The notes beneath the pieces are model-generated. The model was not told the origin of the DNA. It was given only the letters and a program-made list of their open reading frames with translations, and searched no databases. From positions 186,001 to 250,000 of IMG/VR virus record IMGVR_UViG_3300005965_000002: a DNA stretch of 64,000 bases; one strand, 5' to 3'. Below, in pieces: positions 16,521-42,409 of this stretch. Numbering within the stretch: position 1 is the first letter of the stretch; the number at the start of each line of letters is the position of its first letter. Made by a program: the position numbers and the translations under genes.

Positions 16521-17270
16521 ATGTCACAAGATTTTAAAATACAGAATAGATGCGATCATAAGATAAATTGGGAGGAAGGAACTCTTTCTTCTGATAGAAA
16601 ACGCATAGATGTCACTTATCGAATAGCTTCTAAATCATCTGTTTCGTTACGAATAAATAATGTAGCTATTCCAACCTCGAATTATAAAATAGTAAAAGAC
16701 GTAACGGTAGTCGATACTGAAAAGCCTTTTTATATACTAATGAACAATAAAATAAGGCATAATAACCCTCTGGTCGAGGTAAAGTACGTAACTTTTTTAA
16801 ATAGATGCCCAAAATGCCAGGGTACTAAATTTTTGGATGATATTGCTTATAGTTCATCTGGGGATATTACACAAGTAAAAGATGAATTTTTATTGTTACA
16901 AACAGTAGAGAAGTACATAGTTACAAATATAAGAAGTAACAAATTTCATTCTTGGATGGGAACTAACCTCCATGAATTAGTAGGTACAAAGATACTGGAC
17001 ATGGAATTACTACGGAATAAAGTTGTAGATGAAGTAAACTCGGCTATAGAAAAGCTAAAGGATATTCAGAGGCAGTTAGTCTCTACCGGAAGGCCGGTAA
17101 GTGCGGGTGAGCTTTTTGGTGAATTGATATCAGTAGACCTCACCCAGGATTTCGAAGATTTAAGCATAATATCAGTAACCGTAAGATTTACAGCTCAAAG
17201 CGGAAAAAGGCTAAACTATACGCAATTACTGGAGCTGGCAGATCTAAGGCAAAGGATTAACTTCTCATGA
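16521..17270 (+). CDS. gp25/GPW-like baseplate wedge protein with N-terminal extension
   Basis: LLQTVEKYIVTNIRSNKFHSWMGTNLHELVG matches the gp25-family core. It lies directly before baseplate J. The N-terminal part carries C-D-H and C-P-K-C. Confidence 0.7.
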   Translation: MSQDFKIQNRCDHKINWEEGTLSSDRKRIDVTYRIASKSSVSLRINNVAIPTSNYKIVKDVTVVDTEKPFYILMNNKIRHNNPLVEVKYVTFLNRCPKCQGTKFLDDIAYSSSGDITQVKDEFLLLQTVEKYIVTNIRSNKFHSWMGTNLHELVGTKILDMELLRNKVVDEVNSAIEKLKDIQRQLVSTGRPVSAGELFGELISVDLTQDFEDLSIISVTVRFTAQSGKRLNYTQLLELADLRQRINFS

Positions 17271-20200
17271 CTATAGCTGCTCCTATTATTGAGTACCCTA
17301 TGACCGATTGGACTGGCAGCGGTACTGATAAATATTACACATCTGAATTGATACAGATAATATCGGGCACTGTTCCTGTGACTACTGCTGACGTTCAGGA
17401 ACTAGGCTCTATAATTACTGTAGAGTTTAGGTACAGAATTACCTCAGGCGGCACTACTTCGCCTTATTCTAACTTTAGCAATGCTGGAATCACAGTAGGT
17501 AGCACTCTTAGCACGGCTACTGAAATTCCCTGGTCGCTAAACACAGAAGGTATAGTTAGCTTCGATGTTGATGATACTATAGAGTTTGAATTAAAAACAG
17601 TAAAAAGAATTTCAAACAATCAGGGTGCTGGTTATGTATCCGAAGAGAGCTCCCTATCAAAGGTAACAGTAGGGATTATTGCAGAAGATAAAATCACGGC
17701 TTCTGTCATAGAACCTACTGGAACCAGATTAGAGCGTGCTAGGGATTACATAAAGGTATTTGTCCCGGTTAATTCTTTAAAGACAAACAGAGACAATGAT
17801 CTTGTAGGCGTAAACTTTTACATTTCATTAGATGCCGGTGGTGGAGTAAACGGTTACCAAAAGATAAATCAATCCTATATTGTTGAAGCAGATGTGTCGG
17901 AAACAGAATCGGAAGTATTACAGGTTTCATCAACGGAAGATACTACTAATAACCTGACGGTTACAACTACAAAAACCCGTCAGGTGCAAAGAGAGTACGT
18001 AACTTACACTATCAATTCAACAGTATTGAATAGACTTGTATCCGAGAATAAAATTAGGAATGTATTTTTGGATAACGATGCTACTTTAAACCCGGACATA
18101 GTTTATTATTTTGTAACCACTGCTCTTTCCTTTGATAAGTCATTAAAGCAGGTCGTCGAGAGTAATTACTCGGTTGAACTTGAGGGTGAATTCCTGGAAT
18201 ATGCTACAGATTTTCAAAGCATACCGGGTAGAAATAATTCGGATATAATTTTTTCTGTAACAAAAACTCTTACTACTGATAATAATACTGTTAATGTAAT
18301 AGGCGGTTCTGTTGTAAGAGACATATTAGATCCCGTAGCATTAGAATTTTCTAAGTATTACATAATTCAGGATTTTATATTCAAGACGCTATCAGTGGAT
18401 ACGCTTATAGATTTTGACGACGCCGATGGAGATGGTGTCAGTGATCCCATCGAAACTAATATAGATAAGCGAAACTTAGCCGACGCTCTCGGGATTAGGG
18501 ATGGGGCAAATTTACAGTTAATTATAAATGAACAGTTCGATAAAAGAGCTGCAAACTGCAATATCACACGACGAGATCCGATACAGGCTACAGGTAAAGT
18601 AACTTTTTTTGTATCGAATGCCCCGACAAATGATATAATCATTCCAGCAGGTACTCAGGTAAGCACAGCGGCTGACCCGACTACGGGCTCAACATCCGTG
18701 GCTTTTACTGTAGTAGGGACAAAATTAATTGATTCTTCAAATCCTGACTTTTACTATAATCCTACTTTAAGAAGATACGAAATTGAGGCTGACGTAAGGG
18801 CTGTGCTCGGCGGGTCTCAAGGTAATGTACCAGCTGGGTCTATAGAAAGAGCTACTGGATTACCTAGTAATATCCAGGTAACTAATACTAATCCCACTAA
18901 CTACGGCGCTAATAGAGAAACTAATAGAGAGTTGTCCGAAAGAATAAAGCTAGCTATAGCTGGTGTGGATTCAGGTACAGAGGGTGGCTACAAGAAAACG
19001 AGCGAAAGCGTTCCCGGGGTACAGCAGGCCCGAGTAGAAAAAGCTGGTGATGAATTAATGGTTAGAGATTTGGATATCTCCAGCAGAAGACATTTGGGCG
19101 GTAAAGTAGACATATACATTAAAGGCGAGAGAAGACGCCAATACATTGATCAGGTAGCCTTTAAATTTGAGTACCCCACCGACACATTCGGTAAGCTCAG
19201 CGGGGAGAGATTTTACGTAATTAATGCTAATGAATTTAGAATCCAAACCCGGAATACAAAAGTTACGGCCACTAATCCTATTATTTCGGTTTCTAATGTT
19301 AGAAATGTAACTAGAGGATCAGATTATGATATAAGCGGGTACCGTATTATAGGGGATGGGGATACCGTAATTTTAGAAAATAATCAGACCAATAATAGAA
19401 TAGGTATGGCTACATTAGATGTGATAGAGGTAAACTACAGCTATCGAAGCTCTAATGTAATTACTCTGGAACATCAACCCGTAAATACTATTATTTCTGT
19501 AACTGATTCAGATGGTAATCTGGTAGATGAAGCAGAATATAGGTTAGTGAGACTGGAAGATCCGCTGCTAACGGGGGAGTCCTCTATTTCTAAATATGGT
19601 ATAGAATTCTTATTCGACTCTCAAAATGACGTAAATGAATTTAGACAGATAGATGATGAGCAACATGACATGTTTCTCGATATACCGATATCTTTGTCTT
19701 TAAAGGGTGTAGATATTGATTCCATTACGGTTTTGAACGCGGATGACGAATCCATAGTCTATAAAAAAGATATAGACTATGAGGTTACCGGAGGGACGCA
19801 GGTCATACCAACACAATTATCCCTGCTGCCTAATAGTGCGATTAGGCAAGGACAAAGAATCTCTGTATCTTATAGAGCAAATGAAAATTTTGAGGTCACA
19901 TACCAAGCCAACTCATTGGTTGAGCAAGCTCAAGAAGAAGTAGAAAAGTTAAAGCACGCAGATGCCGATGTTGTTGTTAAACAAGGGATAGGAAATAGAG
20001 TCGATATCAGCGCCCGTGTTATAAAAGATGGAAGGTTAGATAGTAGGTATTTAGAATCTGATCGAACTGTTTTAAAATCTAGAATACAAACAGCCGTAGC
20101 TAACTATGTACAAAAGCTCAGGATGGGGGAAACCTTTACTCAGGCCTCACTGGTAAATGTTATCCGTAGCGTACCTGGGGTAAAAGATATAAAATTGCCC

Positions 20201-20665
20201 TTAATACGAATGATGAAACGTAACGGGTCTTTTATTCCTCTCGATGATTTAGGGAATCTTTCATTTGAAGTTTTCCAGAAAACTAGCAGCAGTGGGGTGC
20301 CCTCGTATAGGACACTTGATAGTGTTCTTACTTACCGGACTTCAGAAAACGGCGGGCCTGATCACCTTTTCCGTACCGTTTACGAGGATAATATCAGCTT
20401 AATGCTTGTAGATGACCCGACTGAGGTATCGCATGGTCCTGGTAGAGCTTATATACAGTCTGATGGTAGGATCATAGTCAGTACAAAAGACGGGGCCCCT
20501 CCACAAAGTAAATACTATAAAGCTGCCTATTACGTTTTATACCCAAATGATGTTAATGTAGCTGAGGATATAGAAACCACGGAAATTGAATACCTAGTGG
20601 TGGACTCAGCTAGTTTAAAAGATTTAGAAATTATAACTGAGCAAGTTACCAGAAGAGGATTATAA
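17267..20665 (+). CDS. Baseplate J-like (gp6/gpJ) wedge protein, 1132 aa
   Basis: ATGKVTFF...IPAGTQVST, VLGGSQGNVPAGSI...VTNTNPTNYGANRETNRELSERIKLAIAGVDSGTEGGY...VPGV...GGKVDIYI are characteristic Baseplate_J motifs. Extra N-terminal and internal beta-sandwich domains are present. Confidence 0.9.
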   Translation: MTIAAPIIEYPMTDWTGSGTDKYYTSELIQIISGTVPVTTADVQELGSIITVEFRYRITSGGTTSPYSNFSNAGITVGSTLSTATEIPWSLNTEGIVSFDVDDTIEFELKTVKRISNNQGAGYVSEESSLSKVTVGIIAEDKITASVIEPTGTRLERARDYIKVFVPVNSLKTNRDNDLVGVNFYISLDAGGGVNGYQKINQSYIVEADVSETESEVLQVSSTEDTTNNLTVTTTKTRQVQREYVTYTINSTVLNRLVSENKIRNVFLDNDATLNPDIVYYFVTTALSFDKSLKQVVESNYSVELEGEFLEYATDFQSIPGRNNSDIIFSVTKTLTTDNNTVNVIGGSVVRDILDPVALEFSKYYIIQDFIFKTLSVDTLIDFDDADGDGVSDPIETNIDKRNLADALGIRDGANLQLIINEQFDKRAANCNITRRDPIQATGKVTFFVSNAPTNDIIIPAGTQVSTAADPTTGSTSVAFTVVGTKLIDSSNPDFYYNPTLRRYEIEADVRAVLGGSQGNVPAGSIERATGLPSNIQVTNTNPTNYGANRETNRELSERIKLAIAGVDSGTEGGYKKTSESVPGVQQARVEKAGDELMVRDLDISSRRHLGGKVDIYIKGERRRQYIDQVAFKFEYPTDTFGKLSGERFYVINANEFRIQTRNTKVTATNPIISVSNVRNVTRGSDYDISGYRIIGDGDTVILENNQTNNRIGMATLDVIEVNYSYRSSNVITLEHQPVNTIISVTDSDGNLVDEAEYRLVRLEDPLLTGESSISKYGIEFLFDSQNDVNEFRQIDDEQHDMFLDIPISLSLKGVDIDSITVLNADDESIVYKKDIDYEVTGGTQVIPTQLSLLPNSAIRQGQRISVSYRANENFEVTYQANSLVEQAQEEVEKLKHADADVVVKQGIGNRVDISARVIKDGRLDSRYLESDRTVLKSRIQTAVANYVQKLRMGETFTQASLVNVIRSVPGVKDIKLPLIRMMKRNGSFIPLDDLGNLSFEVFQKTSSSGVPSYRTLDSVLTYRTSENGGPDHLFRTVYEDNISLMLVDDPTEVSHGPGRAYIQSDGRIIVSTKDGAPPQSKYYKAAYYVLYPNDVNVAEDIETTEIEYLVVDSASLKDLEIITEQVTRRGL

Positions 20666-20667
20666 AG

Positions 20668-23600
20668 ATGGCCACAAACCTCGGTGATGATGTTTTTAGC
20701 GTATATGACGGACTTTCTTATGCCTATGATAAGGTATTCTTCCAACCCGGAAAGCCTCCTCTTGCTGCAGAGCTTAATGATGCCCAGCAGTTTGTTGAAC
20801 TACTTTCACAAAAGAGCACGGGGCACTTACCCTCTGGGTGGTTAACCAGTAGGTCTCACTATACTTCTTCTGAATTAGTGAATAAGTTTTACACTCAGAA
20901 CCCAAAAGGAGCCAAACCAGAGGTAGCTTTGGTAAACGGTTGGCCAATCTATGTAACCAACACGGATACTGAACTAAAGCACGTAAACTCTATAGATTTT
21001 AATGATTTTGAGTTACGCTCAGGTACGCGAGTAGACGGAGTTTTCCTTGAAGTATGGAGAAAGAAAATAGCTCCTAATAGAGATGATATGGATGCTTCGT
21101 CAGCTAAGCCTCAGCCCATACGTATCACCAACGATATTAATAGTGTTGATATGCTTGATAACAATATTGGATGGGCTGTCGGGGATAATGGAGTCATTTT
21201 AAAGACTACAGATGGCGGTAACAATTGGGTTTCTAAAGAGGCTCCTGTTTCTGTAAGTTGGAAGGCTGTCAAATTTCTAAACAGCTCTATTGGGTTTGCC
21301 GTGGGTTCTGGCGGATACATCATTAAGAGCTTAAACGGCGGACAAACCTGGTTTACGGTAGATACCGACATAAACGATACGTTGAACGATATAGTGATTT
21401 TAGATTCTAAAAATGTGGTGGCAGTTGGTAATAACGGCACGGTTCTATTAGCATCCGATGGTTTAACTTTTAATGTGATTACTCAGACTTCAGGGGTCAC
21501 GGAAGATTTTAACGGTGTATTTTTCTTTGATACATCTGTGGGGTGGGTCGTAGGAAATAATGGCACACTTCTTATTTCTTTAGATGGCGGTAGATCCTGG
21601 ACTAAACAAACCATTACTGATTCAGATACAAATGCTAAGATTGAGAAAAATCTAAATTCTGTTGGTTTTTATAATTTAAATGATGGGATTATAGTAGGTG
21701 ATGATGGCCTAATCCTAAAGAGCACAGATGGTGGGTATAACTGGGCTAACGTGAGCGGCAGAATATGGACAGGATCCGAATATAAGTCCCTAGTTCAGAT
21801 AGACCCACGAAAAGAGAACCATCTAAATAAAGTGTTTATTAGCAGAAACTTTCCGTTAAATTTTACCATTTCAGTTTATTCTTCATCTAAGAATTTTTTC
21901 ACTGGTGCCACATATAAGATATCTCCTGCAAGTAGTCCGAATTCGTTAGTGCTTGAGTGGAGAGGTGTGCAGGACGGAAAGTCTTACTCAAAGGTATTAG
22001 ACCTTGAGGTATACGCATCATCAGAAGAACTGAGAGATGCTATCAATAATATAACAAGTCCTTATTTAGCATCAGATGTGGGTTTACCCTATGACGATAG
22101 AAGAAAAACAAGAGTTTTCGAGTCTATCGTAAACTTCGCCCCCATTGCTTCTCCGTCAAATATTAACCCTATATCTGGAACGATACCTTCCAGGACAACT
22201 ACTAATATCAACTTTTCTATTGAGGATAGAGCATGGATAGCCGGTAATGACGGCACCGTACTGACCACGGTTAATAGCGGTTCTAGGTGGCAAATATCAG
22301 ATACCGGTAAGGGTATAGACTTTTATGGTATAGAATTCATAGACGAGAATTTAGGTTGGGTGGTAGGTGCCGAGGGTTTTATCCTAAAGTATGACCCGGA
22401 AAACCAGACTAACAATTATGAAGAGCAGACTACGGATTTAAGTGTGGAGACTACAGAGAGAATATATCCGGAGGGAAATATCTTATCAGACGCCGAAGAT
22501 TTCCTTGAGGATTTAATGGTCGATCCTAATGTGGGTGTTGAAACCTCCAGGAGAGTCCAAATTCAGTACCGTATTCGGATAGTGGATGGAGTGGATCCTT
22601 TTAATTATCCTGAGGCAGGGTTAGGTGCTCAGTACGTATACAGCCAAGGGCCTAACAATAATGCATCGGATGCGGGTAGCTACACGTTTAAGAATATGGG
22701 CAGTGAGAATGGAGACTACGGGCTTTGGAGAGCTCGGTGCAGGAACACCTTTGATGGGTTTACTTGGGCTGTCCCAATGTTTTTTGTGTCAAGAAGGAAT
22801 TCGTCCCCTTTTAATATAGAGTCTAATATTAATGGTTCTACCTATTTTGAATTAGGAGCTGTCCGCCCGGATGGTCTAACATATGAAGAGATTGTAGATA
22901 CTGATATTGTAGATCTTAGAAGAAAGTTAAATATCAATTCCTATAGTCATTTGCTTGAGCAAAATTTGGACTCTCTGCTAAGCAATAATCTTAGGACAAA
23001 GCTCGATAATAGAGATAACCGTGGTACTCAATTTAGCACAAGTATAATGGGGGTTGACTCTTATGAGGGAATTTCTTCCATTGGAAATTTAGCTACAGGA
23101 GGAGTTTCTTCAACAGCGGTTGTTCGAGAAGATGTTAAGCAATTGAATCCTACAATAGCATTGACCGAAACAGAGCTCACTTTTGGACCCCGCGAAAAGG
23201 CTCTGTATCATAACGACTTGGCTTTTTATAGCGCTGTCGTCGTACGTGATGGTGAAGTTACTACTGAGCCTGTGGAAGGTACCTGGGAGGGTTTGGGTAC
23301 AAATACGGTAACTTTTGTTTTGAGTGATGCTAATGTTGCAGAAAACAACATCGAATATAGATTTACAGCCAGCTACATAGACTACTCAGGTACAGGTTTA
23401 TCCAAGGTCCCCCACAAGCCTTTAGGTATTCTCTACGTACCGGATGCCACGGGCAACTCCAGATTTTATCGAGGTATAAATACTCGTGACGTGTCCCAGA
23501 CCATTGAGACTTTAGCGGAAAGAGTAACCGGGTATCCTGATTATACCGTGGCCTATTCCGGTAGGACCATTTTGGATAATAAAGAATCCAGAGATCTGTA

Positions 23601-25143
23601 TAAGTTAGCCGTAACCTCGGATGAGGGTAGTACTTCTTATAACAGATCAGTACGTACCTTTAAAGGACAACAATTTAGAGGGTCATTGGTAGAATACCAT
23701 TATTTCTATCGGACAAGTGCTCCCACCAGAACTTTGGAAATACCGAAAAACGTAAACAATTATAGTGTGTTTTCTGTTCGTCAGGTAAAAGGAGTAAATG
23801 GATCCCTTTATAAGATTTCTAATAGTTATGCTAAGGGGGAAACACTTAGAGACTGGAAAATTAATGATCTGAATCAGTCGGTGAATAGCAATATTATTAT
23901 TTATCTTGATGAGTCATTCACTATACCTGCTGATACTGTGGTAGAAGTGATAATGGAAGTTAATACGGCACCATCCTCTTTATACTCTGATTTAGGTATC
24001 ACAGTTACCAATGAGGGTGATAATCAGGGAAGTTTACGTGCTCCGTATATCGCAAACTATAATGTAGGATCAAAAGGCATAGGCGGACTATACAGCTCCA
24101 TCCTATTTCCAGTTTTTATCAATGATCAGCAGAATTATATAGAGGTCGATTTAAATAATCAAAAAAAAATAAATCAAGATGAGCCCTATACGGGGTTTCC
24201 GGCTTTTTCTGGTATGGGAGAATTAGAAGATGGGTCAATTCTTGGTGTAAGCACAATTCAAACCGATGACAGCAACCATCAGCTCTATGTTTGGTACCAG
24301 GAGAATACCGGAAAAAAACAATTTTCTGCTTTACCCATTTCAAGCATTACAGGTACAACGGACGACCCGGATAATACCGGACTAGGAACATCAATAATCA
24401 GGCTGAATATAGACCCTAGAGTTACCCTCAGCCAGAAGCTGGTGTACGTGCCTATGCTCGTTAAGCAGACTACTCTACCTAATTTAGGAGATACTAGCGT
24501 AGCATACGCTACATATTATTACAGGCCCTATCAAACATTGAATACATTACCGGAGTCACTATCTGTAGAAATAATGAAGTCTTTTGAGAATGTTTACGTA
24601 TCTAACCTCGGAACTGGCGGTACTCCAATAATTAGAGGGGAGCCGTACCAGAACCCTATTGAGCATATTCCTGTGAATGACCCTGGATTTCTGAATGAGA
24701 ACATATTTTCAAATGTTGATGATTTAGATTTTATTAATTATAGTATTGATTCAGGGTTTGTTAAACTGCCCGCTATAATCTCCAGGACATTGGGAAAAAC
24801 AATTACTCTATCAAATCCTAATAATGTGGGGGATAGCCTGGGTAGGGCTTTCTACTCAGAGTGCTCCGAAAATTTCAGGGTACAGGCTGAGGATTTAACT
24901 ATTGCTACTCCAAGAAAAGTTTTTATACCAATGATCGCCAGAATAAGGTCAGCCGTAACAGAGCCTTTTGTTAGGGGAGAGCTGGTGCTGTTGGTAGTCT
25001 CAAAGGTGTATAAAGCTAGAATCGAAAACTCTACTGGTTTTTATGAGGACGAGAATGAGGAATACCAGCCCGGTTACATAGAGGAAGCTGATACTGCAGT
25101 AGGTGTATACCGCCTGGCAAATAAACCCATTGTTCGGATGTAA
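20668..25143 (+). CDS. Baseplate/fibre protein (DUF4815-like N-terminus) with an inserted 7-bladed YCF48/BNR-type beta-propeller
   Basis: N-terminal VFFQPGKPPLAAELNDAQ. Seven W/F-x-VG-x-x-G-x-I-x-x-[TS]-x-[DN]GG-x-x-W-type blades at ~21133-22400. Paralogous to 50642..54211. Confidence 0.75.
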   Translation: MATNLGDDVFSVYDGLSYAYDKVFFQPGKPPLAAELNDAQQFVELLSQKSTGHLPSGWLTSRSHYTSSELVNKFYTQNPKGAKPEVALVNGWPIYVTNTDTELKHVNSIDFNDFELRSGTRVDGVFLEVWRKKIAPNRDDMDASSAKPQPIRITNDINSVDMLDNNIGWAVGDNGVILKTTDGGNNWVSKEAPVSVSWKAVKFLNSSIGFAVGSGGYIIKSLNGGQTWFTVDTDINDTLNDIVILDSKNVVAVGNNGTVLLASDGLTFNVITQTSGVTEDFNGVFFFDTSVGWVVGNNGTLLISLDGGRSWTKQTITDSDTNAKIEKNLNSVGFYNLNDGIIVGDDGLILKSTDGGYNWANVSGRIWTGSEYKSLVQIDPRKENHLNKVFISRNFPLNFTISVYSSSKNFFTGATYKISPASSPNSLVLEWRGVQDGKSYSKVLDLEVYASSEELRDAINNITSPYLASDVGLPYDDRRKTRVFESIVNFAPIASPSNINPISGTIPSRTTTNINFSIEDRAWIAGNDGTVLTTVNSGSRWQISDTGKGIDFYGIEFIDENLGWVVGAEGFILKYDPENQTNNYEEQTTDLSVETTERIYPEGNILSDAEDFLEDLMVDPNVGVETSRRVQIQYRIRIVDGVDPFNYPEAGLGAQYVYSQGPNNNASDAGSYTFKNMGSENGDYGLWRARCRNTFDGFTWAVPMFFVSRRNSSPFNIESNINGSTYFELGAVRPDGLTYEEIVDTDIVDLRRKLNINSYSHLLEQNLDSLLSNNLRTKLDNRDNRGTQFSTSIMGVDSYEGISSIGNLATGGVSSTAVVREDVKQLNPTIALTETELTFGPREKALYHNDLAFYSAVVVRDGEVTTEPVEGTWEGLGTNTVTFVLSDANVAENNIEYRFTASYIDYSGTGLSKVPHKPLGILYVPDATGNSRFYRGINTRDVSQTIETLAERVTGYPDYTVAYSGRTILDNKESRDLYKLAVTSDEGSTSYNRSVRTFKGQQFRGSLVEYHYFYRTSAPTRTLEIPKNVNNYSVFSVRQVKGVNGSLYKISNSYAKGETLRDWKINDLNQSVNSNIIIYLDESFTIPADTVVEVIMEVNTAPSSLYSDLGITVTNEGDNQGSLRAPYIANYNVGSKGIGGLYSSILFPVFINDQQNYIEVDLNNQKKINQDEPYTGFPAFSGMGELEDGSILGVSTIQTDDSNHQLYVWYQENTGKKQFSALPISSITGTTDDPDNTGLGTSIIRLNIDPRVTLSQKLVYVPMLVKQTTLPNLGDTSVAYATYYYRPYQTLNTLPESLSVEIMKSFENVYVSNLGTGGTPIIRGEPYQNPIEHIPVNDPGFLNENIFSNVDDLDFINYSIDSGFVKLPAIISRTLGKTITLSNPNNVGDSLGRAFYSECSENFRVQAEDLTIATPRKVFIPMIARIRSAVTEPFVRGELVLLVVSKVYKARIENSTGFYEDENEEYQPGYIEEADTAVGVYRLANKPIVRM

Positions 25144-25146
25144 TAC

Positions 25147-26223
25147 ATGGAAATTCGTTTAGGAAAAAACAATGTCATTAGAAGAGTTAAGGATGGACAA
25201 GGCAATACTAAGTACATCGTTAACTTAGGTACTATCATATATAACAATGTATTTAAGACATTAGATAACCTTGAAATTCCTATTTTTAATGAATCCATAT
25301 TTAGATTGCCTGATGATGCCAATAAGTACGCTGCTGTAAACGCTTACTATAATGTAGAGCAAGGCAGGTTCATATTTAAGACAGTCAAGAAGTCTATCTC
25401 AAATATCGGCTCTGTTAAGTCTGATGTAGTATATAATTCACTTCCTATCTGCCAGTTCATTTTAAGGCAAGTAGACCCTACTTTTGAAGTTATTCAAGTC
25501 TATGAGTATTCACAAGCTGCTACTTTTAGTATCTCAGATTCTCTAGAAAAAGGAGAAAAGGGGCTGCAGGGTCCTTTAGGGCAGACAGGAGCTCAAGGAG
25601 AAACAGGAGCTTTAGGCATAACAGGAGCTTTAGGAGAAATAGGATATACGGGTATACAAGGACCTACAGGCGTAGGTGAGACAGGGTATCACGGCCCGCA
25701 AGGAGAAACAGGGTGGTATCCCGATCTTGATTTAACTTTTCACTTAAAATTTAAGAGTGCAGATACGGTGCAGGTCGATTACTCCGTTTATGAAAAAGAT
25801 TTTCAATGGATTTCTAGTGGTGCCTCCTATTTTTCTACAGAGACAGGAATAATTGATAATGCCCATTTTGCTCAGTACGTCGGTGGGACTTCTAGATATT
25901 TAAGAAATGAATACATTGGTATCGGTAAGTCAGGTATAGGTTCAACCGGTTCTTTTTCTATGTGGTTCCGTCTTGACGTTCCGCCAATTCCTTCTTTTAC
26001 GTATAGCATAGATTCACAAGTATCTACGAAGGTACGGTTTCAGGATACTTCTGAGAATTATCCGTCGAACTGGTTCTGGGAATTTGGTGGAATAAATAAG
26101 ACCAGCACCGGTACAGATATCCCTGTCATTGATTTTGAATCCTCAGGATCATATGAGGTTTCATTGACGGCTACTAACAATTATGGATCTAATAAAGTTA
26201 CTCAAATTGTAGTGGTTCCATAA
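25147..26223 (+). CDS. Collagen-like protein 1: shared N-terminal domain + Gly-X-Y repeat + N-terminal half of a LamG-like domain + PKD domain
   Basis: GEKGLQGPLGQTGAQGETGALGITGALGEIGYTGIQGPTG..., then DLTFHLKF...DYS...GSFSMWFRLD, then PSFTYS...FQDTS...WFWEFG...GSYEVSLTATN. Confidence 0.75.
   Translation: MEIRLGKNNVIRRVKDGQGNTKYIVNLGTIIYNNVFKTLDNLEIPIFNESIFRLPDDANKYAAVNAYYNVEQGRFIFKTVKKSISNIGSVKSDVVYNSLPICQFILRQVDPTFEVIQVYEYSQAATFSISDSLEKGEKGLQGPLGQTGAQGETGALGITGALGEIGYTGIQGPTGVGETGYHGPQGETGWYPDLDLTFHLKFKSADTVQVDYSVYEKDFQWISSGASYFSTETGIIDNAHFAQYVGGTSRYLRNEYIGIGKSGIGSTGSFSMWFRLDVPPIPSFTYSIDSQVSTKVRFQDTSENYPSNWFWEFGGINKTSTGTDIPVIDFESSGSYEVSLTATNNYGSNKVTQIVVVP
25552..25719 (+). repeat. Collagen-like Gly-X-Y repeat (13 triplets, a GV interruption, then 5 more)
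   Basis: Read directly from the translation. Thr occupies the Y position in 7 triplets. Confidence 0.9.
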
Positions 26224-26744
26224 TGGATAGAATATTAGCAATGATTCCGTTAAAAGATGGGCACGCCTTTAAGTCTGAGGTTTTAAGGGGCTTGTGCAAG
26301 CAAACAGTGCCTGTTGATATAATGGCTGTTTCTAGACCTAAAAGCGAAAGGCATCGTAATATTCCTGCGGGATATATATCGATGTCAGAATGTAGAAATA
26401 TAGCAAAAGAAGAGGGTTTGGAGCAATACAATTCTGAATATTTTCTTTTGCTCAATAGAGACGTGGTATTAAAAAGAGACACAGATATTGAGGATATGAT
26501 AAATTTTCTTCAGTTTAATAGAGATTTTGGAGCTGTAGCTATAAATACTAGAAAAAAAGAAATCCGATTATTGGTTGATAATACTCATACAGATATAGCA
26601 TGCATGGTAATAAGAAGAAGTATATTGGAGAAGATTACTTTTCATAATGAAAAACATTGTAATTGCAGATGCGTGTGTGGCTATATAAGATCTAACGGTT
26701 TGAGTGTGGGCTACATAGACCATAGAAAATGTCCGGAGATTTAA
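26223..26744 (+). CDS. Minimal GT-A fold (GT2-like) glycosyltransferase
   Basis: Ordered GT2 landmarks: ILAMIP, LRGLCKQT, SECRNIA, EYFLLLNRDVVL (DxD position reads N-R-D), FGAVA, DIACMVIRRSILEKITF. Coupled to both neighbours (TAATG and TAA-ATG). Confidence 0.65.
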   Translation: MDRILAMIPLKDGHAFKSEVLRGLCKQTVPVDIMAVSRPKSERHRNIPAGYISMSECRNIAKEEGLEQYNSEYFLLLNRDVVLKRDTDIEDMINFLQFNRDFGAVAINTRKKEIRLLVDNTHTDIACMVIRRSILEKITFHNEKHCNCRCVCGYIRSNGLSVGYIDHRKCPEI

Positions 26745-29700
26745 ATGCTAGATTCTGTTTATTTTGTAGACCTATCAGCTACGGGTACTAGCCACGCAGG
26801 TACACCAAAAGATCCTTTTTCTTATGAGGATTTTTCTAATATTGTTGGGCCTTCAACTGATGATGAGCTTTTCTATTTTAAGGGCCAATATACTATTACA
26901 TCTGCATCACCAGCATTTAATACGGGTGGCGGTAATAAAAGAATAATAGCATGGGACTTAGAAGAGTTTGGTCCTTGGAGATTAAAGGTAGAAGACTTTT
27001 CTAAATTTTCATTAGGATCTACTTTTATCATAGAAGATGGTATCCTTTTAATAGATGACACAGGGGATATATCTTTTGACTTATTTCAACTAGAAAACGT
27101 CTATTTATATAGAAAAACATCTACAATTACAGACAAATTTATATTGGGAGGCTCGGCTGCTTCTAATATCTATATGTCCACAGTACAGATAGATGGAATT
27201 TTAGAGTACGACACCGGATCCATAACTACTAGTTGTCTTAAGGTAGAGAACGGTATATCAATTCCTTCTACAGCATCCACCGCAGCACTAACCTATTCTA
27301 CTTACAACGGAGATTCTACTGCAGTTACTCCTGATCCTGGATTCTCAGGGTATTTTAACTTTGCGAACAACCAGGATTTATTTGATTTTACGGGAATTAC
27401 GGACATAAATGATGACCCGCAGTTCCCTTCCGGGATTACTGTATCCGACCCTTTTAATGACCCCATTACCTTCTTTTTTGACGGTAATCCCAAAGTTAGA
27501 TCCCAGGGTGCCTTTTATAGCAATGGGGCTAATCCAATAGTTTATGTAGATTTGAATAGTGGTGTCCCCGCTGGTAGTGGGACTTCCGGATCCCCCTATA
27601 ATTTTACTCAATTTTATTCTGACCTGGATACCCGGTCATATGACACGGGTACGATTATTAAGCTTAAAGGGATGGCACAAACTACTAATTATATTTCTAT
27701 AGGCCAAAGATCGTTTGAGGGACATCTACTATTAGAAAGGTGGGAGAGTAGTATCCCCTGGGGAATTCATACTACGGATGGTATATCAAATAGAGGTATA
27801 TCAAGAGGCGGAATATTTAAAACTGATGCCGATTTTATTAATACATTGGATTTGTCGAATACCTACTTAGAGGCAAATAGAGTAATACTGTATTCTACTG
27901 ATAGAGGTGCTAAGATTAAAGGATCTACAGTGATAAGTTCTGGCACCCCAACAAGGATAGGTGACTGCTACACTCCCGAGATATACCTATTTGTCGATTC
28001 TAATTACATAGATTCCGGGGTAGCGGATGTCGGGTCAGATGTTTTTGTGTGGTATTTTGGGTTGTCCACAGCGTTTAGCCAAGCCTCTAATTCCGAATCT
28101 GACTTTTTTGATCCTTCTGAGGGTATTATTAAGACCTTTCAATTAGATGATTGCGTTTTTGGTGTCACTCCCTCAGTGGTTTCTTTTTCTACTACTTTCG
28201 ATGAAAATAATTACTTATACCCTTCCGATATATATAATAGCATCACTACTACCTCTTCAGATTATAGCACGAAATCAGGTTACTCTACTGGTATCTCAGG
28301 CAATCCCAGATACGGGGTGGGTGCCTACTATTTTCCGGAGGTGGTAGCTTCCTTTACAGCGTCCCCTACTTCAGGCGGTATACCGTTAGAAGTGAATTTT
28401 AATAATGACTCTACAGGTATTATAACTGAATACTCATGGGATTTTGGAGATGGTACTACTTCTACAGAAGAAAACCCTGTAAAGACTTATACCAGTGCGG
28501 GTACTTATACGGTTACGTTGACAGTTACTGGGTTAGAAGGGATTACTGATACTTTTACTAGAACTGATTATATTATAGCAGTTGATTCACTCACAGCTGG
28601 GTTTTCAGGATCACCTTTATCTGGATCAGAGCCCCTCACTGTTAATTTTACGGATAGCTCAATCGGTGACATAAGTTATCGTATATGGAATTTTGGTGAT
28701 GGTACGGCTTTAGAAGATGTAACCGATCCATCTCATACTTATAGTAATCCAGGAACATATACCGTCTCTCTTACAGTGCGTGATGCAGATTCTAATGAAG
28801 ATACAGAAACTAAAACAGATTATGTAGAAGTATCCTCTGGACCTTTAACTGCTAATTTCACGGGTACCCCACAATCTGGAGAAAAACCACTTACTGTTAA
28901 TTTTACAGATAATTCTGCGGGCAGTATTACATACAGATTGTGGGATTTTGGAGATGGGAATACGCAAGAAAACGTTACTGACCCATCTCATACTTATAGC
29001 GACTCCGGCGTTTACACAGTTTCTTTAACTATTAGAGATGCATCTCTCAATCAAGATATAAAAACAAGAACCGAGTATATAACAGTTACAGAGCCGCCTC
29101 TAAATGCTGATTTTTCTGCTAGTCCTGTTTTTGGCACTGAGCCTTTATCAGTATCTTTTACAGATAGCTCTACAGGGGATATATCTTATAGGCTATGGAC
29201 CTTTGGTGACGGGACTTCTGAAGAAGATACCGTAAACCCCTCCCATACATATACCAGCCCTGGTTTATACACAGTCAGCCTGTTGGTGAGGGATCCTTCA
29301 TTAGAAGAAGATTTAGAGACAAAGGTTAACTACGTAACTGTAGGTGAAGATTTTATAGTAGCCGACAAGGTTTTGATGGAATCCAGTAATGCTTCTACAG
29401 GGGATTATTGGAAGATATACATAGATGACCAGAAAAGATTTGTTTTTGAGACCAATGTATATATATGGAGAACTGTAGATCCTCAAGCTGAGATTAAAAA
29501 ATGGACGTTTATCCAATTTTTACCGCATAAAGATACCATGTACGTTGGGAAATACAGCTCTGGTTGGAAAAAAGTAGATCTTGTTAAATTCATTAACGGG
29601 TCTCCGGATACTCCAACCAGCACCAGAACGTATGTCGTTCCGAATTCTACATTTAAGATAGACGACATTCAAATATGGGATAAAGAAGTAAACAAAAAAA

Positions 29701-29753
29701 CCCATTTTCAGCAAAATAGGGGTAAAGCGGGATTACTGGATAATCGATCCTAA
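26745..29753 (+). CDS. Adhesin-like protein: two beta-helix-like modules + 4 PKD domains + C-terminal half of a LamG-like domain
   Basis: WDLEEFGPWR module. Four F-x-G/A-x-P-x-x-G-x-x-PL-x-V-x-F-x-[ND]-x-S-x-G...WxFGDG...GxYTVxL repeats. Terminal WKIYID...KWTFI...YVG...KIDDIQIWDK. Confidence 0.75.
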   Translation: MLDSVYFVDLSATGTSHAGTPKDPFSYEDFSNIVGPSTDDELFYFKGQYTITSASPAFNTGGGNKRIIAWDLEEFGPWRLKVEDFSKFSLGSTFIIEDGILLIDDTGDISFDLFQLENVYLYRKTSTITDKFILGGSAASNIYMSTVQIDGILEYDTGSITTSCLKVENGISIPSTASTAALTYSTYNGDSTAVTPDPGFSGYFNFANNQDLFDFTGITDINDDPQFPSGITVSDPFNDPITFFFDGNPKVRSQGAFYSNGANPIVYVDLNSGVPAGSGTSGSPYNFTQFYSDLDTRSYDTGTIIKLKGMAQTTNYISIGQRSFEGHLLLERWESSIPWGIHTTDGISNRGISRGGIFKTDADFINTLDLSNTYLEANRVILYSTDRGAKIKGSTVISSGTPTRIGDCYTPEIYLFVDSNYIDSGVADVGSDVFVWYFGLSTAFSQASNSESDFFDPSEGIIKTFQLDDCVFGVTPSVVSFSTTFDENNYLYPSDIYNSITTTSSDYSTKSGYSTGISGNPRYGVGAYYFPEVVASFTASPTSGGIPLEVNFNNDSTGIITEYSWDFGDGTTSTEENPVKTYTSAGTYTVTLTVTGLEGITDTFTRTDYIIAVDSLTAGFSGSPLSGSEPLTVNFTDSSIGDISYRIWNFGDGTALEDVTDPSHTYSNPGTYTVSLTVRDADSNEDTETKTDYVEVSSGPLTANFTGTPQSGEKPLTVNFTDNSAGSITYRLWDFGDGNTQENVTDPSHTYSDSGVYTVSLTIRDASLNQDIKTRTEYITVTEPPLNADFSASPVFGTEPLSVSFTDSSTGDISYRLWTFGDGTSEEDTVNPSHTYTSPGLYTVSLLVRDPSLEEDLETKVNYVTVGEDFIVADKVLMESSNASTGDYWKIYIDDQKRFVFETNVYIWRTVDPQAEIKKWTFIQFLPHKDTMYVGKYSSGWKKVDLVKFINGSPDTPTSTRTYVVPNSTFKIDDIQIWDKEVNKKTHFQQNRGKAGLLDNRS
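28343..29342 (+). repeat. Four tandem PKD-domain repeats
   Basis: Four ~83-aa units with WDFGDG/WNFGDG/WTFGDG cores, similar at both protein and DNA level. Confidence 0.9.
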
Positions 29754-33200: not shown

Positions 33201-34297
33201 AAAACACTCATATAGTTTCACATGATAGATTATTTTTTACACTTTACGGGGATGCGTACATATGTGGTAGTAATATAGTCGGGCCCAGTGGGAATAAAAC
33301 TCTTCTCGATATAAATAGCGAAGAGGATTCTGATCCTGTTCAATTTTCTATTAAAGACTCTATTATAGATTTTAAGGATTTAGGAGTAACGGGAGATAGC
33401 GCTAAGCTAGAGGGGTCCATCCTGAGGACAAGCAACACATCTTTTAACTATGGTGGAATAAATAGAATTGGGGATTTACATGGTATCACGGGTATTCATG
33501 TGGATCCACAATTTGATTTTGATATACCAGAGGCGTGGCCTGATTGGAACGCTGGAGCTAATGCCTCTACTAGCCCAGATGACTCAACAAAGTGGGCAAG
33601 GTGGTCTACCTGGGGTAAATTAGTACGGGTAGGCAGCAGTGAGTATACGGAGATACCCACGGGTTTATTTGAGAATGATAGGCTAGGTATAGGTGCTCTA
33701 TATTTTGATACTAACCCAACATTTACGGTTAACTATACAGAAGGTAACCTTGTTAGTGTACTGGATAGACCAGAAAAAACTTGTAATCAATTTATAGCGA
33801 TAGGGTGGGTAAAAAACCCATCTGTTTCTGACGGCAAAATTATTTATCCTATAGCTGTGTCAGATATGTACGGGAATGTCCTTGGAGATGATGTTGCTTC
33901 TTTTAAAATAGGAATAAAAAGGGAAGACGAGGACTATCGTCTTGTTTATTCCGGAGCGCAGTCTTTGCTAATAAATAGATCTAATAGAATAGATTTAGCT
34001 GATAATAAATGGCATTTTTTGAGCTATGTTTGTGTTAATGATGAAGGGTTAATGAAGTTCTATGTCGATGGTATTGAGGTTCCTTCTGATACGGATACGG
34101 ATGATGAGGGTTTTACAAAGAATATAGCCAGGTCTAAATTTGTGCGCATAGGAGGAGGGGATGTCTATAGCCCCTACCTTACTCAAGAGAGTTCTGCTAT
34201 ATCGCTGTATAATTGGAGAGTAGGATTTAATTTTACCATTCATCAAGAATGGCTAAAAGAGTTAATGGAAATAGATAAAACAAACTTGGGTATATAA
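30290..34297 (+). CDS. Adhesin-like protein: PMP-like right-handed beta-helix + ~5 PKD + W[DN]x4GPW module + LamG-like domain
   Basis: N-terminal YVYKKATGANNGTSWTDAY...GDELWVAQ and FxxN/GAI-type repeats. PKD cores. WDLDRYGPWR. C-terminal FIAIGWVK...KWHFLSYV...KFYVDG...LYNWRV. Confidence 0.75.
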   Translation: MSIVYVYKKATGANNGTSWTDAYTELYTAVNNASAGDELWVAQSNGFLEWYHPGPGVSPSTEVITVNKPLTIYGGMPVGSTSISERTFDKKSILNGQSNSFHSLLKLEISTGEFILDNFDIVNFGTTSSYPIIVDGTGPEITQVKFKNCLFEGNVSSVACVYELASNNSVLAIENCYFTRNEGKLSSCISKNSILALYVNNSAFFNNKADSTTTTQSGAIYSIYETTIDNCVFKENEGDLAGAVYIVNYGAYTIDINHCVFYKNKSTANPALYGSGGALRIATKSDESVKNSIFWENESTLSSNGNQIYVINTSSTTVSFEVQHCCIQDGISTGAVLTENSPGNIVVSDDGTLVITDPLFREPSLFGFDAHSFLCEGQALDGLDIGIVGNDVSDFEFFPTSGFSPLSTTAVSTGRYKWGYEFDFLWEIDGVSKTDPLPTYNLEEAKYYNVSLHTKVVEFSVYLCGFSSAYKYEDSSIKLSYLNVETNINPSFTVTPIEGDVPLNVKFTDTTTGTITSWLWSFGDDGTDTDQNPDRTFAANGLYDVELTVTGPEGSFSTNLFEQTGEDYINVRPVADFNLSSSIISIGDTVNFTDQSLVTICGWVWSWYKKGSSPEDGEIFYSTEPEALNWPYEDPSLTFSSPTFSPGETYVVSLKVYSPYEGTVIDDEANISNNTTTKEVTILAEVSANFTFTPNTGQQPLTVNFEDTSTGGADAWSWDFGDGDTSTSQDPSHTYTENGSYTVTLTATRTSPASTDTITKTVNVSPRAEFEASPVSGYTPLTVQFTDKSVTTVTNWQWYFGDGTSSSSQNPTKTYNQTGTYTVELIVTGPGGSGSATKTDYITADFPGDAYYVDLNKTASGAGTETDPFNYEDFSSRTTSADNSLEYKIRGSLNLQQGVHSSSTIGESNIVMTPWDLDRYGPWRLHVSSSNFDNLNISAKKISGAILATDLDISSGDPVRFNLYLCGSTIENTHIVSHDRLFFTLYGDAYICGSNIVGPSGNKTLLDINSEEDSDPVQFSIKDSIIDFKDLGVTGDSAKLEGSILRTSNTSFNYGGINRIGDLHGITGIHVDPQFDFDIPEAWPDWNAGANASTSPDDSTKWARWSTWGKLVRVGSSEYTEIPTGLFENDRLGIGALYFDTNPTFTVNYTEGNLVSVLDRPEKTCNQFIAIGWVKNPSVSDGKIIYPIAVSDMYGNVLGDDVASFKIGIKREDEDYRLVYSGAQSLLINRSNRIDLADNKWHFLSYVCVNDEGLMKFYVDGIEVPSDTDTDDEGFTKNIARSKFVRIGGGDVYSPYLTQESSAISLYNWRVGFNFTIHQEWLKELMEIDKTNLGI

Positions 34298-41179: not shown

Positions 41180-42409
41180 ATGGCATTTAGAACTAGAAAA
41201 GTAGCTGATTTCTCTACCCTTAATAAAGATGTTAATGTCCACGGCGAGAATGTCGTGTCCATTAAAGGGGGCTCTGTTGCTATCGGAGATACCTGGATAC
41301 AGTTTAAAGGTACTAAAATTGATCTCCAGGATTTTGTAGAAAAGTATATAACCAATTCAAGAAGGTTGTTTAATCAGCGATTTGGTGTGCTTTATGTATT
41401 GATAGCGATTAACGAGAAAGCACAGTTAGAAGTAATACCTAGTATATCGTATAACAAGACATCGACCGGTGATGTTAAAGTTTTTCCTAGTTTATCGAGT
41501 AAATTACCTATAATGGTAGTTAAGCTTACCCAAGATGGAAGCTACGGGTTAACCGGTATTAGTAGAATAACTGAAAGCGATGTAGAACAGTACTTAGGGT
41601 ATGGTAATTTTACTCTGAGGGGCCCTCAGGGAGAAACAGGGGGTCTTGGCAGTACCGGTTTTCAAGGACTTACCGGTTTTATCGGAGCTACTGGTTATTC
41701 TGGTCCTACAGGGCTACAAGGAGAGACCGGAATTAATAGTTTTTCTGTAAAAGGGTATCCTGGAGTTAGAGGAGAGCAGGGGGAGAGCCTTCCAGCTTTT
41801 GAACCGACCAGATATGCGATTCCAGTAGCAAATTTTGTAGGTGCCCCTTTAAGCGGAGAAGCAAGTCTTTCTGTATCCTTTACCGATTTATCAAACGGAA
41901 ATCCAACTTCCTGGCTATGGGATTTTGGGGATGGAAATACTTCTACTCAACAGAATCCGACTCATAGTTACGCTTCAGCTGGGACATATACTGTGTCTTT
42001 GGTAACTACGAGCCCAGCTGGTGAGGATCAAGAGATTAAATATGATTACATAACAGTTACCGAAGCATTAGCTGCTGATTTTGCGGTAACCCCCACAGAA
42101 GGTGACGAGAGAGTAACTACATTTAATTTTGATGGCAGTTTCTCAGCCGGAACGATAACTTCATATAGTTGGGATTTTGGAGATTCAATTTCTGCTACGG
42201 GAGAGACTGCGACCCATGTTTATAATGGGGTATCTGGTCAAATTACAGTATCCCTTACAGTAACGGGGCCTTCTGGCTCAGATACTGTATCAAAAACTAT
42301 TACTGTGGACGGGTACATAATACAGAGCACAACAGATGACGATGAAGATACCTGGCAGGATACAGCGGATAGTTCAGAGGATAATGTACAAAATTCATCG
42401 GAGGAATAA
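41180..42409 (+). CDS. Collagen-like protein 3: shared N-terminal domain + Gly-X-Y repeat + 2 PKD domains + acidic tail
   Basis: GPQGETGGLGSTGFQGLTGFIGATGYSGPTGLQGETGIN...GYPGVRGEQGES, two WxWDFGD PKD units, and a D/E-rich end. Confidence 0.8.
   Translation: MAFRTRKVADFSTLNKDVNVHGENVVSIKGGSVAIGDTWIQFKGTKIDLQDFVEKYITNSRRLFNQRFGVLYVLIAINEKAQLEVIPSISYNKTSTGDVKVFPSLSSKLPIMVVKLTQDGSYGLTGISRITESDVEQYLGYGNFTLRGPQGETGGLGSTGFQGLTGFIGATGYSGPTGLQGETGINSFSVKGYPGVRGEQGESLPAFEPTRYAIPVANFVGAPLSGEASLSVSFTDLSNGNPTSWLWDFGDGNTSTQQNPTHSYASAGTYTVSLVTTSPAGEDQEIKYDYITVTEALAADFAVTPTEGDERVTTFNFDGSFSAGTITSYSWDFGDSISATGETATHVYNGVSGQITVSLTVTGPSGSDTVSKTITVDGYIIQSTTDDDEDTWQDTADSSEDNVQNSSEE
41621..41788 (+). repeat. Collagen-like Gly-X-Y repeat (13 triplets, interruption, 4 more)
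   Basis: Read directly from the translation. Thr falls at Y in every second triplet of the first 12. Confidence 0.9.

Follow-up and report, generated by a model that had tools for sequence, protein, structure and literature searches.

A LamG-like jelly-roll domain apparently divided between two tail-fibre genes in a jumbo-phage clade: a probable docking joint assembled in trans

Introduction

The window analysed here is a stretch of 64,000 nucleotides from the IMG/VR virus record IMGVR_UViG_3300005965_000002, and covers bases 186001-250000 of this 258,580-bp record. Two genes of the window, P0001 and P0003, each encode a segment that resembles a part of a LamG/concanavalin A (ConA)-like beta-sandwich. 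The segment in P0001 is named the N-piece and the segment in P0003 is named the C-piece. The locus raises the question of whether these two pieces belong to one domain and, if so, whether the domain is a relic of a fissioned ancestor or is completed by two proteins in trans. Both possibilities had been put forward in the original prediction, which was made from the sequence of the window, and its genes, gene order, coordinates and quoted motifs were correct as given. The evidence presented below argues for a natural two-gene split LamG domain that assembles in trans and acts as a docking joint, with a probability of roughly two in three.

Results

Domain anatomy of the two genes

P0001, P0003 and the gene between them, P0002, are arranged as follows.

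25147-26223, + strand: gene P0001, an open reading frame of 358 amino acids (aa), the collagen-stalk fibre protein with the N-piece; 39 full-length homologues
25147-25551, + strand: P0001 residues 1-135, conserved N-terminal domain, 46-70% identical in homologues
25552-25713, + strand: P0001 residues 136-189, collagen-like region of 18 Gly-X-Y triplets; Pfam Collagen, E 2.8e-7, and PHROG tail-fibre collagen
25714-25980, + strand: P0001 residues 190-278, the N-piece, putatively the first ~5 strands of a LamG-like jelly roll; ends with SFSMWFRLD
26014-26211, + strand: P0001 residues 290-355, PKD domain directly after the split point; Pfam PKD_4, E 3.4e-7
26223-26744, + strand: P0002, 173 aa, a small, weakly GT2-like gene outside the conserved pair
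26745-29753, + strand: gene P0003, an open reading frame of 1002 aa, the partner protein with the C-piece at its extreme C-terminus
26745-28346, + strand: P0003 residues 1-534, variable 'cargo' region, paralogous to parts of the two fibre proteins that come next
28347-29339, + strand: P0003 residues 535-865, four PKD domains; Pfam PKD_4, E 2.5e-63, 4 stretches
29358-29696, + strand: P0003 residues 872-984, the C-piece, putatively the C-terminal two thirds of a LamG-like jelly roll; KVLMESS...FKIDDIQIW
29697-29750, + strand: P0003 residues 985-1002, C-terminal amphipathic helix; model residues 126-142

No Pfam match was obtained for residues 1-135 of P0001, and we presume from the neighbouring baseplate genes that this domain anchors the protein to the baseplate. 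The glycine columns of the collagen-like region are invariant across the 39 P0001 homologues, and this region presumably forms a trimeric stalk. The N-piece that follows is marked by the motifs DLTFHLKF...GSFSMWFRLD at residues 192-277, which correspond to nucleotides 25720-25977. In P0003, four PKD domains precede the C-terminal half, as the original prediction had described, and were located by Pfam PKD_4 at residues ~535-865. After these PKD domains, the sequence continues as KVLMESS...FKIDDIQIWDKEV and runs to the stop. The cargo region at residues 1-534 is without a Pfam match; it is related to P0007 (E 6e-13) and P0006 (E 2e-12) by phmmer, and is lineage-specific, being missing from the ~218-aa partners found in most relatives.

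Both pieces are conserved as families

The N-piece family was collected with the N-terminal domain as the query, and then with a profile of the full-length homologues. The 39 proteins, with lengths of 352-400 aa and 38-64% identity to P0001, all consist of the N-terminal domain, the collagen-like region, the N-piece and the PKD domain, and the PKD core residues are invariant in 39/39. The N-piece is among the best conserved parts of P0001 in the family alignment (A6), with the consensus YPDLDLLLYLKFKSDD....DYSVYERD..W...GIVDNCH.V.Y.GG.S.Y....GFTG.IQAWV. Many homologues carry a variable insertion of 13-40 residues within the N-piece, at P0001 residues ~222-230. This insertion is rich in G-x-TG repeats, such as GAGYTGVGYTGIGLGDTG, and resembles the collagen-like repeat of the same protein.

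A word-index protein search with the C-piece returned P0003 itself only, and the family emerged with an exhaustive HMMER search using P0003:866-1002. This search gave 28 representatives of 50%-identity clusters, at 25-55% identity; their alignment is referred to as A7. In all 28 representatives, the C-piece module begins at a common boundary and extends to the end of the protein. The carriers of the module span 127-1108 aa, and their N-terminal parts are unrelated. The commonest carrier is ~218 aa long and consists of one PKD domain and the C-piece, and at least nine carriers of 292-1108 aa have unrelated N-terminal extensions. In the window, the variable part on the C-piece is the 534-residue region together with three extra PKD domains. 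The label 'adhesin', which the original prediction had given to P0003, is unverified, because the usual partner contains one PKD domain and the C-piece only. In P0034 (residues ~100-290) and P0035 (residues ~700-930), an extra stretch of ~190 residues lies between strand 1 (TIIQSQ) and strand 2 (YWRFYID) of the C-piece. The stretch in P0034 is without a Pfam match, and these two cases would represent a further insertion within an already split domain.

All 39 N-piece proteins and all 28 C-piece representatives are intact open frames. Homologues with an intact fused domain, for which the original prediction had proposed a search, were absent among these 39 + 28 family members. Judged from these sequences, the split appears to predate the divergence of the phage group and to have never been reversed in the sampled members.

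The two pieces are paired in the same loci

A synteny test was performed with profile hidden Markov models of both pieces over all open reading frames of the loci. Ten loci had enough downstream sequence for the test: the window, together with its copy L001, and the loci L003, L004 and L007-L013. L001 is an IMG/VR contig (UViG_3300025377_000091, 80,945 bp) with a stretch 100% identical to the P0001 region and an identical copy of P0003; as an identical copy of the window, it provides no independent evidence, and nine of the loci count as distinct. Exactly one N-piece gene, with one C-piece gene downstream, was found in 10/10 loci, and the two genes are directly adjacent, 3-20 nucleotides apart, in seven of the ten.

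The genes that separate the pair are a glycosyltransferase (GT)-like gene in the window (and L001) and two genes in L010. The GT gene described between the halves in the original prediction is P0002, which is present in the window but is not a general feature of the pair. Its match to Pfam Glycos_transf_2 (PF00535) covers profile positions 69-161 only, with 17.5 bits and E 0.004, below the cut-off of 23.3. In the short contig L005, a GT-like gene likewise comes after the N-piece gene; none lies between the paired genes in L003, L004, L007-L009 and L011-L013. The GT-like gene between the halves is specific to the lineage of the window and L005.

Joining of the two genes by read-through, by frameshift or by another genetic code was considered and is ruled out. 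In L003, a further in-frame stop (TAA) comes after the stop TAG, and the following ATG lies in another frame; in L004, three stops lie between the paired genes; in the window, a whole gene lies between them.

Structures of the individual pieces

The C-piece alone was modelled by AlphaFold2 from an alignment of 22 sequences, with a predicted local distance difference test (pLDDT) value of 86.8 and a predicted template modelling (pTM) score of 0.78. The model shows nine strands and the C-terminal helix, and the conserved last strand FKIDDIQIW is left unpaired. The best PDB matches of this model in Foldseek were LG/LNS domains, with E-values of at least 0.05 and poor template modelling (TM) scores, and the structure alignments were taken from VIA-align instead. 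These alignments cover only the C-terminal two thirds of the targets and skip the first ~40-80 residues: residues 57-181 of 185 in agrin (1pz9), 43-204 of 204 in SAP, and 81-215 in TSPN. Shape matches of the C-piece in the ESM Atlas reached TM 0.62-0.64 to viral Laminin_G_3 clusters, and Laminin_G_3 clusters made up 71/100 of its language-model neighbours. The C-piece model thus belongs to the jelly-roll beta-sandwich fold of the LG, LNS or pentraxin type.

The N-piece alone, modelled from an alignment of 39 sequences, gave a pLDDT of 49.9 and a pTM of 0.24. In the ESM Atlas, the N-piece (P0001 residues 188-280) matched Laminin_G_3 clusters at TM 0.60-0.67; the Atlas model of the whole P0001 is poor (pLDDT 0.54), and shape matches from that model are weak evidence. 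Independent folding of each half had been named in the original prediction as an outcome that would speak against it. On this point the two pieces differ: the N-piece was predicted to be disordered on its own, while the C-piece was modelled with confidence.

A two-chain complex is predicted

The N-piece and the C-piece were cofolded, each with its family alignment. An interface was predicted with a score of 0.93, while the best of three controls scored 0.00. The mark used for this score is reached by 58/80 solved complexes and by 2/110 mismatched pairs, counts that are a rough guide here as our own alignments were used. Three runs of the complex share at least 90% of contacts, with a partner pLDDT of at least 87. 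The pLDDT of the N-piece was 83 beside the C-piece and 29 beside unrelated proteins. The re-association of the halves in trans, as suggested by the original prediction, is in this way supported by computation, with the 0.93 against 0.00 of the complex score and the rise of the N-piece pLDDT from 49.9 to 83.

The predicted complex contains ~250 touching residue pairs in an interleaved strand pattern. N-piece residues 85-90 (SFSMWF) lie against C-piece residues 61-66 (WTFIQF) and 111-118 (FKIDDIQI), N-piece 55-59 against C-piece 110-113, and N-piece 66-68 against C-piece 103-106. N-piece residues 14-15 of the first strand lie against C-piece residues 116-117 of the last strand. The invariant W88 of the N-piece touches C-piece residues 61-63, in the strand that starts with the invariant W61. 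The C-terminal helix of the C-piece contacts the N-piece in the model and is predicted to pack over it like a latch; helix residues 125, 128, 132, 135-136 and 139-140 fall in the predicted interface, and L139 is nearly invariant. The interface positions of the C-piece are more conserved than its other positions (0.54 vs 0.43, p = 0.001). The complex model supports the binding of the two pieces, rather than demonstrating it.

LamG likeness at the sequence level

Sequence comparison gave a different result from structure comparison. Neither piece reached the gathering score of Laminin_G_3 (PF13385), and no Pfam match at E<=10 was found for P0001:185-285 or P0003:860-1002; the whole proteins were also without a LamG match. 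PHROGs scans of the whole proteins and of the pieces likewise gave no LamG match. When the whole genome was scanned in six frames for Laminin_G_3 at E<=10, the sole match was the domain at 33806-34162 in P0006. Searches of PDB sequences by phmmer and hmmsearch, with single sequences and small profiles, returned chance matches only, such as zinc-alpha-2-glycoprotein at E 0.03-0.2. BLASTP of each piece against the intact LamG domain of P0006 was not significant. The alignments A6 and A7 and their padded concatenation were compared by hhalign with a 4-sequence P0006-type alignment and P0122; the best match (P = 0.01, probability 4%) was not significant, and lay in the expected register (A7 36-75 vs 85-130), the LamG alignments being very thin. 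In the phage GenBank collection, the C-piece was without a match and P0001 matched collagen repeats only. No paralogues of either piece were found in the same genome. The LamG-like fold of the original prediction is therefore upheld by structure (TM 0.60-0.67; 71/100 neighbours) and not by sequence (no Pfam match at E<=10).

Genomic setting and neighbouring fibre genes

Every long open reading frame of the window lies on the + strand. Three genes upstream of the split-domain genes are relevant to their setting.

903-2942, + strand: baseplate-hub-like protein
17267-20665, + strand: gp6/Baseplate_J-like wedge protein
20668-25143, + strand: P0004, 1491 aa, with Ycf48/BNR-type beta-propeller repeats (PF14870, E 4e-31)

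The baseplate-hub-like, wedge and propeller genes place the P0001/P0003 locus among the baseplate and tail-fibre genes of a jumbo myovirus-like phage. In relatives, the P0001-like gene always comes after the gp6/Baseplate_J-like gene and then the BNR gene. The P0004-like gene separates the gp6-like wedge gene from the P0001-like gene in 9/9 relatives that reach that far upstream, and P0004 may be the site to which the N-terminal domain of P0001 attaches. A single open reading frame of 3221 aa is located at 3571-13236, between the baseplate-hub-like gene and the wedge genes. The completeness of the record was estimated by CheckV as ~55%, so the full genome may far exceed 258 kb. No nucleotide match was found in the phage GenBank collection.

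The fibre genes downstream of P0003 contain an intact, unsplit Laminin_G_3 domain, which serves as a comparator.

33806-34162, + strand: C-terminal Laminin_G_3 domain of P0006 (30290-34297); six-frame Pfam scan, 27.5 bits, E 4.6e-7

Pfam on P0006:1100-1335 gave 27.3 bits for Laminin_G_3. Intact domains homologous to that of P0006 are found at protein ends in L003 and L009, and as a free-standing 210-aa protein in L010 (20215-20847). The intact LamG domains in P0006 and its relatives show that this phage group has both split and unsplit LamG in one module.

The N-terminal module of P0003 (26745-27440), with the motifs Y.VDL..SGTG...DPF.YEDF...WDL..YGPWRL, occurs once in P0006 (residues 850-1079) and about three times in P0007 (residues 400-556, 643-722 and 885-971). 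P0008 (29818-30288; 156 aa) consists of two PKD domains only, and in P0017 of L003 (10823-12034) the same two PKD domains are fused behind a P0003-like N-terminal module. Modules have apparently been shuffled among adjacent fibre genes at PKD boundaries. A second collagen-like fibre protein of 409 aa is encoded 11 kb downstream, at 41180-42409 (collagen at residues ~142-204), and does not match the N-piece profile. It is followed at 42410-44293 by a 627-aa protein that matches only PHROGs of unknown function.

Sugar-modification gene clusters were found inside the fibre module of relatives, near the position of P0002: L008 12236-19115, L012 8200-13068 and L010 14034-18859. They encode GT2 transferases, TylF-like methyltransferases, radical SAM enzymes, a dTDP-sugar isomerase and an epimerase. 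The presence of sugar-modification genes hints that the fibres are glycosylated, perhaps in their collagen-like or PKD parts.

Discussion

Proposed assembly of the split domain

In the proposed mechanism, P0001 and P0003 would each hold an incomplete part of one LamG/ConA-like beta-sandwich. P0001, encoded beside the baseplate genes, would form a stalk that is collagen-like and presumably trimeric. Its segment just after the collagen, with the first ~5 strands of the sandwich, would be unable to fold alone, and P0003 would supply the remaining ~9 strands and the C-terminal helix. After translation, the strands of the N-piece would insert between those of the C-piece, and the helix would close over them. 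SFSMWF (P0001 270-275) would be flanked by WTFIQF and FKIDDIQI of P0003, with the first strand of P0001 paired to the last strand of P0003. The outcome would be a single two-chain domain that links both proteins non-covalently.

As each chain carries a PKD domain at the cut, the pair would correspond topologically to a LamG domain whose fifth strand is followed by a loop bearing a PKD-PKD insertion, with the cut placed between these two PKD domains. The constant C-piece, with an N-terminal side that varies from one PKD domain to ~1000 residues, suggests a plug-and-socket by which interchangeable modules are hung on a conserved stalk. The anatomy of the domains, their conservation, their pairing in the loci and the fold of the C-piece are observations and the complex is a prediction; for the assembled joint, we infer a 3:3 stoichiometry, a place in the virion and a docking role. 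A more far-reaching form of the proposal, that the jumbo-phage clade uses the two-gene LamG-like jelly roll as a dedicated assembly joint and that the N-piece stays unfolded until it is captured by a C-piece with exchangeable cargo, is tentative and falls somewhat short of even odds.

Alternative explanations

Several observations weigh against a split domain that assembles in trans. Adjacent fibre genes are expected to be syntenic in any case. LamG membership is unsupported by sequence: the Pfam and PDB sequence searches were negative, and the hhalign comparison with very thin LamG alignments gave no significant match. The C-piece was modelled confidently alone, and might hence be stable without a partner. 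The interface residues of the N-piece are no more conserved than the rest, the N-piece being uniformly conserved. In addition, predictors can build a familiar fold from fragments by memory, and the high complex score therefore shows the joint compatibility of the pieces with the LamG fold more surely than their binding. Taken together with the poor ESM Atlas model of P0001, the missing sequence signal, the confident C-piece model and the fold memory of predictors could also be read as two independent, non-complementing domains, in which the N-piece resembles LamG only superficially and the complex is an artefact. This explanation is improbable. The N-piece remained unfolded alone despite its 39 aligned sequences, and gained at least 50 pLDDT units only beside the C-piece, with all three controls at 0.00. 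The C-piece aligns to no more than the C-terminal two thirds of complete domains, and both pieces occur in all ten loci.

The composite domain may also be real, with a split that serves no docking purpose. An ancestral collagen-LamG head would have gained a PKD-PKD insertion and then undergone neutral fission, and the domain would be a sugar-binding head. That the commonest partner contains a PKD domain and the C-piece only, in ~218 aa and without cargo, fits such a history; so do the unsplit collagen-plus-Laminin_G_3 proteins, for example P0122, and the conserved N-piece motif DYS.YERD, whose position away from the predicted interface would be compatible with a ligand site. However, the unrelated N-terminal extensions of at least nine carriers (292-1108 aa) indicate that the free N-terminus has been used repeatedly, and no re-fusion has occurred across families diverged to 25-40% identity. 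A split without docking is considered unlikely, though less so than two independent domains. Far less credible is a reading in which the halves serve no function today, either as decaying remains of a gene that was fissioned or disrupted, which is the relic reading raised in the original prediction, or as an artefact of assembly or frameshift. In the window, the halves are set apart by a GT-like gene and ~865 residues of other sequence, an arrangement that does resemble an insertion into a former LamG gene. This reading is contradicted by the two families of conserved open frames (39 and 28), kept in dozens of diverged relatives from independent samples and paired in 10/10 loci, by the separate start codons and the several in-frame stops between the genes (L003, L004), and by the invariant hallmark residues.

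Comparison with known systems and significance

Full-text literature searches turned up no account of phage fibres with a split LamG or a split jelly roll. To our knowledge, long-kept splits through the hydrophobic core of a single domain are rare, and are represented by split inteins, single-strand donation in pili, and lectins cut after folding. If the docking joint proposed here is true, it would represent the first natural case in which a lectin-type beta-sandwich is split over two genes and serves as a docking device in a virion, and phages would have a new means of coupling exchangeable outer modules to a fixed attachment on the virion. It would also explain why the half-domains escape family annotation, and would give protein engineers a natural pair of fragments (~90 + 135 residues), probably of high affinity.

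The closest relatives in fold are the Laminin_G_3/ConA-like fibre-tip domains of P0006 and P0122. They resemble the split domain in fold class, by structure comparison, and in lying distal to a collagen-like stalk within a tail-fibre module. The domains of P0006 and P0122 are unsplit, whereas the fold described here is divided between two gene products and lies below the Pfam LamG thresholds. Unlike these fibre-tip domains, the split domain has PKD domains flanking the cut on both sides, and an additional C-terminal helix is predicted to cover its N-piece.

Two-chain legume lectins, considered here together with the processing of concanavalin A, share with the split domain a ConA-like jelly roll in which two chains are held non-covalently, and pea and lentil lectins belong to this type. 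FRIL is likewise described as a 'two-chain' lectin, and the lectin chains come from one precursor that is folded and then cut by a vacuolar protease (PMC13086875). While legume lectin chains derive from one precursor, here two genes with their own ATG starts encode the chains, and each chain carries other domains. Because the genes have their own starts, the chains must find each other and fold together.

In chaperone-usher pili, donor-strand complementation completes the incomplete Ig-like fold of one subunit with one strand of another subunit. The split domain would be similar to this system, in which an incomplete beta-sandwich is completed in trans to give a very stable non-covalent joint in an extracellular fibre. 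Pilins receive one strand of an Ig-like fold, whereas here ~five strands of a jelly roll, about a third of the domain, would be supplied, and no chaperone is evident.

Branched receptor-binding complexes of phages use adaptor or anchor domains, such as T4 gp10-like modules, in which the anchors are complete N-terminal domains that bind each other. The proposed joint and the T4 gp10-like anchors are alike in that variable modules, of receptor-binding or depolymerase type, are hung on a conserved virion protein by means of a conserved docking element. In contrast to these anchors, the constant element here is C-terminal on the variable partner, and the interface would be the hydrophobic core of a shared fold.

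Gene products that reassemble in trans are also known from other phages. Reported cases are NrdA of the Aeromonas phage Aeh1, which is made in pieces, and split inteins in 'fractured genes' (PMC3045599, PMC2677866). These splits reportedly stem from a mobile endonuclease or intein and restore an enzyme, and NrdA assembly reportedly uses added interaction domains. Unlike in Aeh1 NrdA and the inteins, no mobile element was seen at the LamG split, which appears ancient and fixed in the whole clade, and the split domain itself is apparently the joint. The LamG split would thus belong to natural fold complementation.

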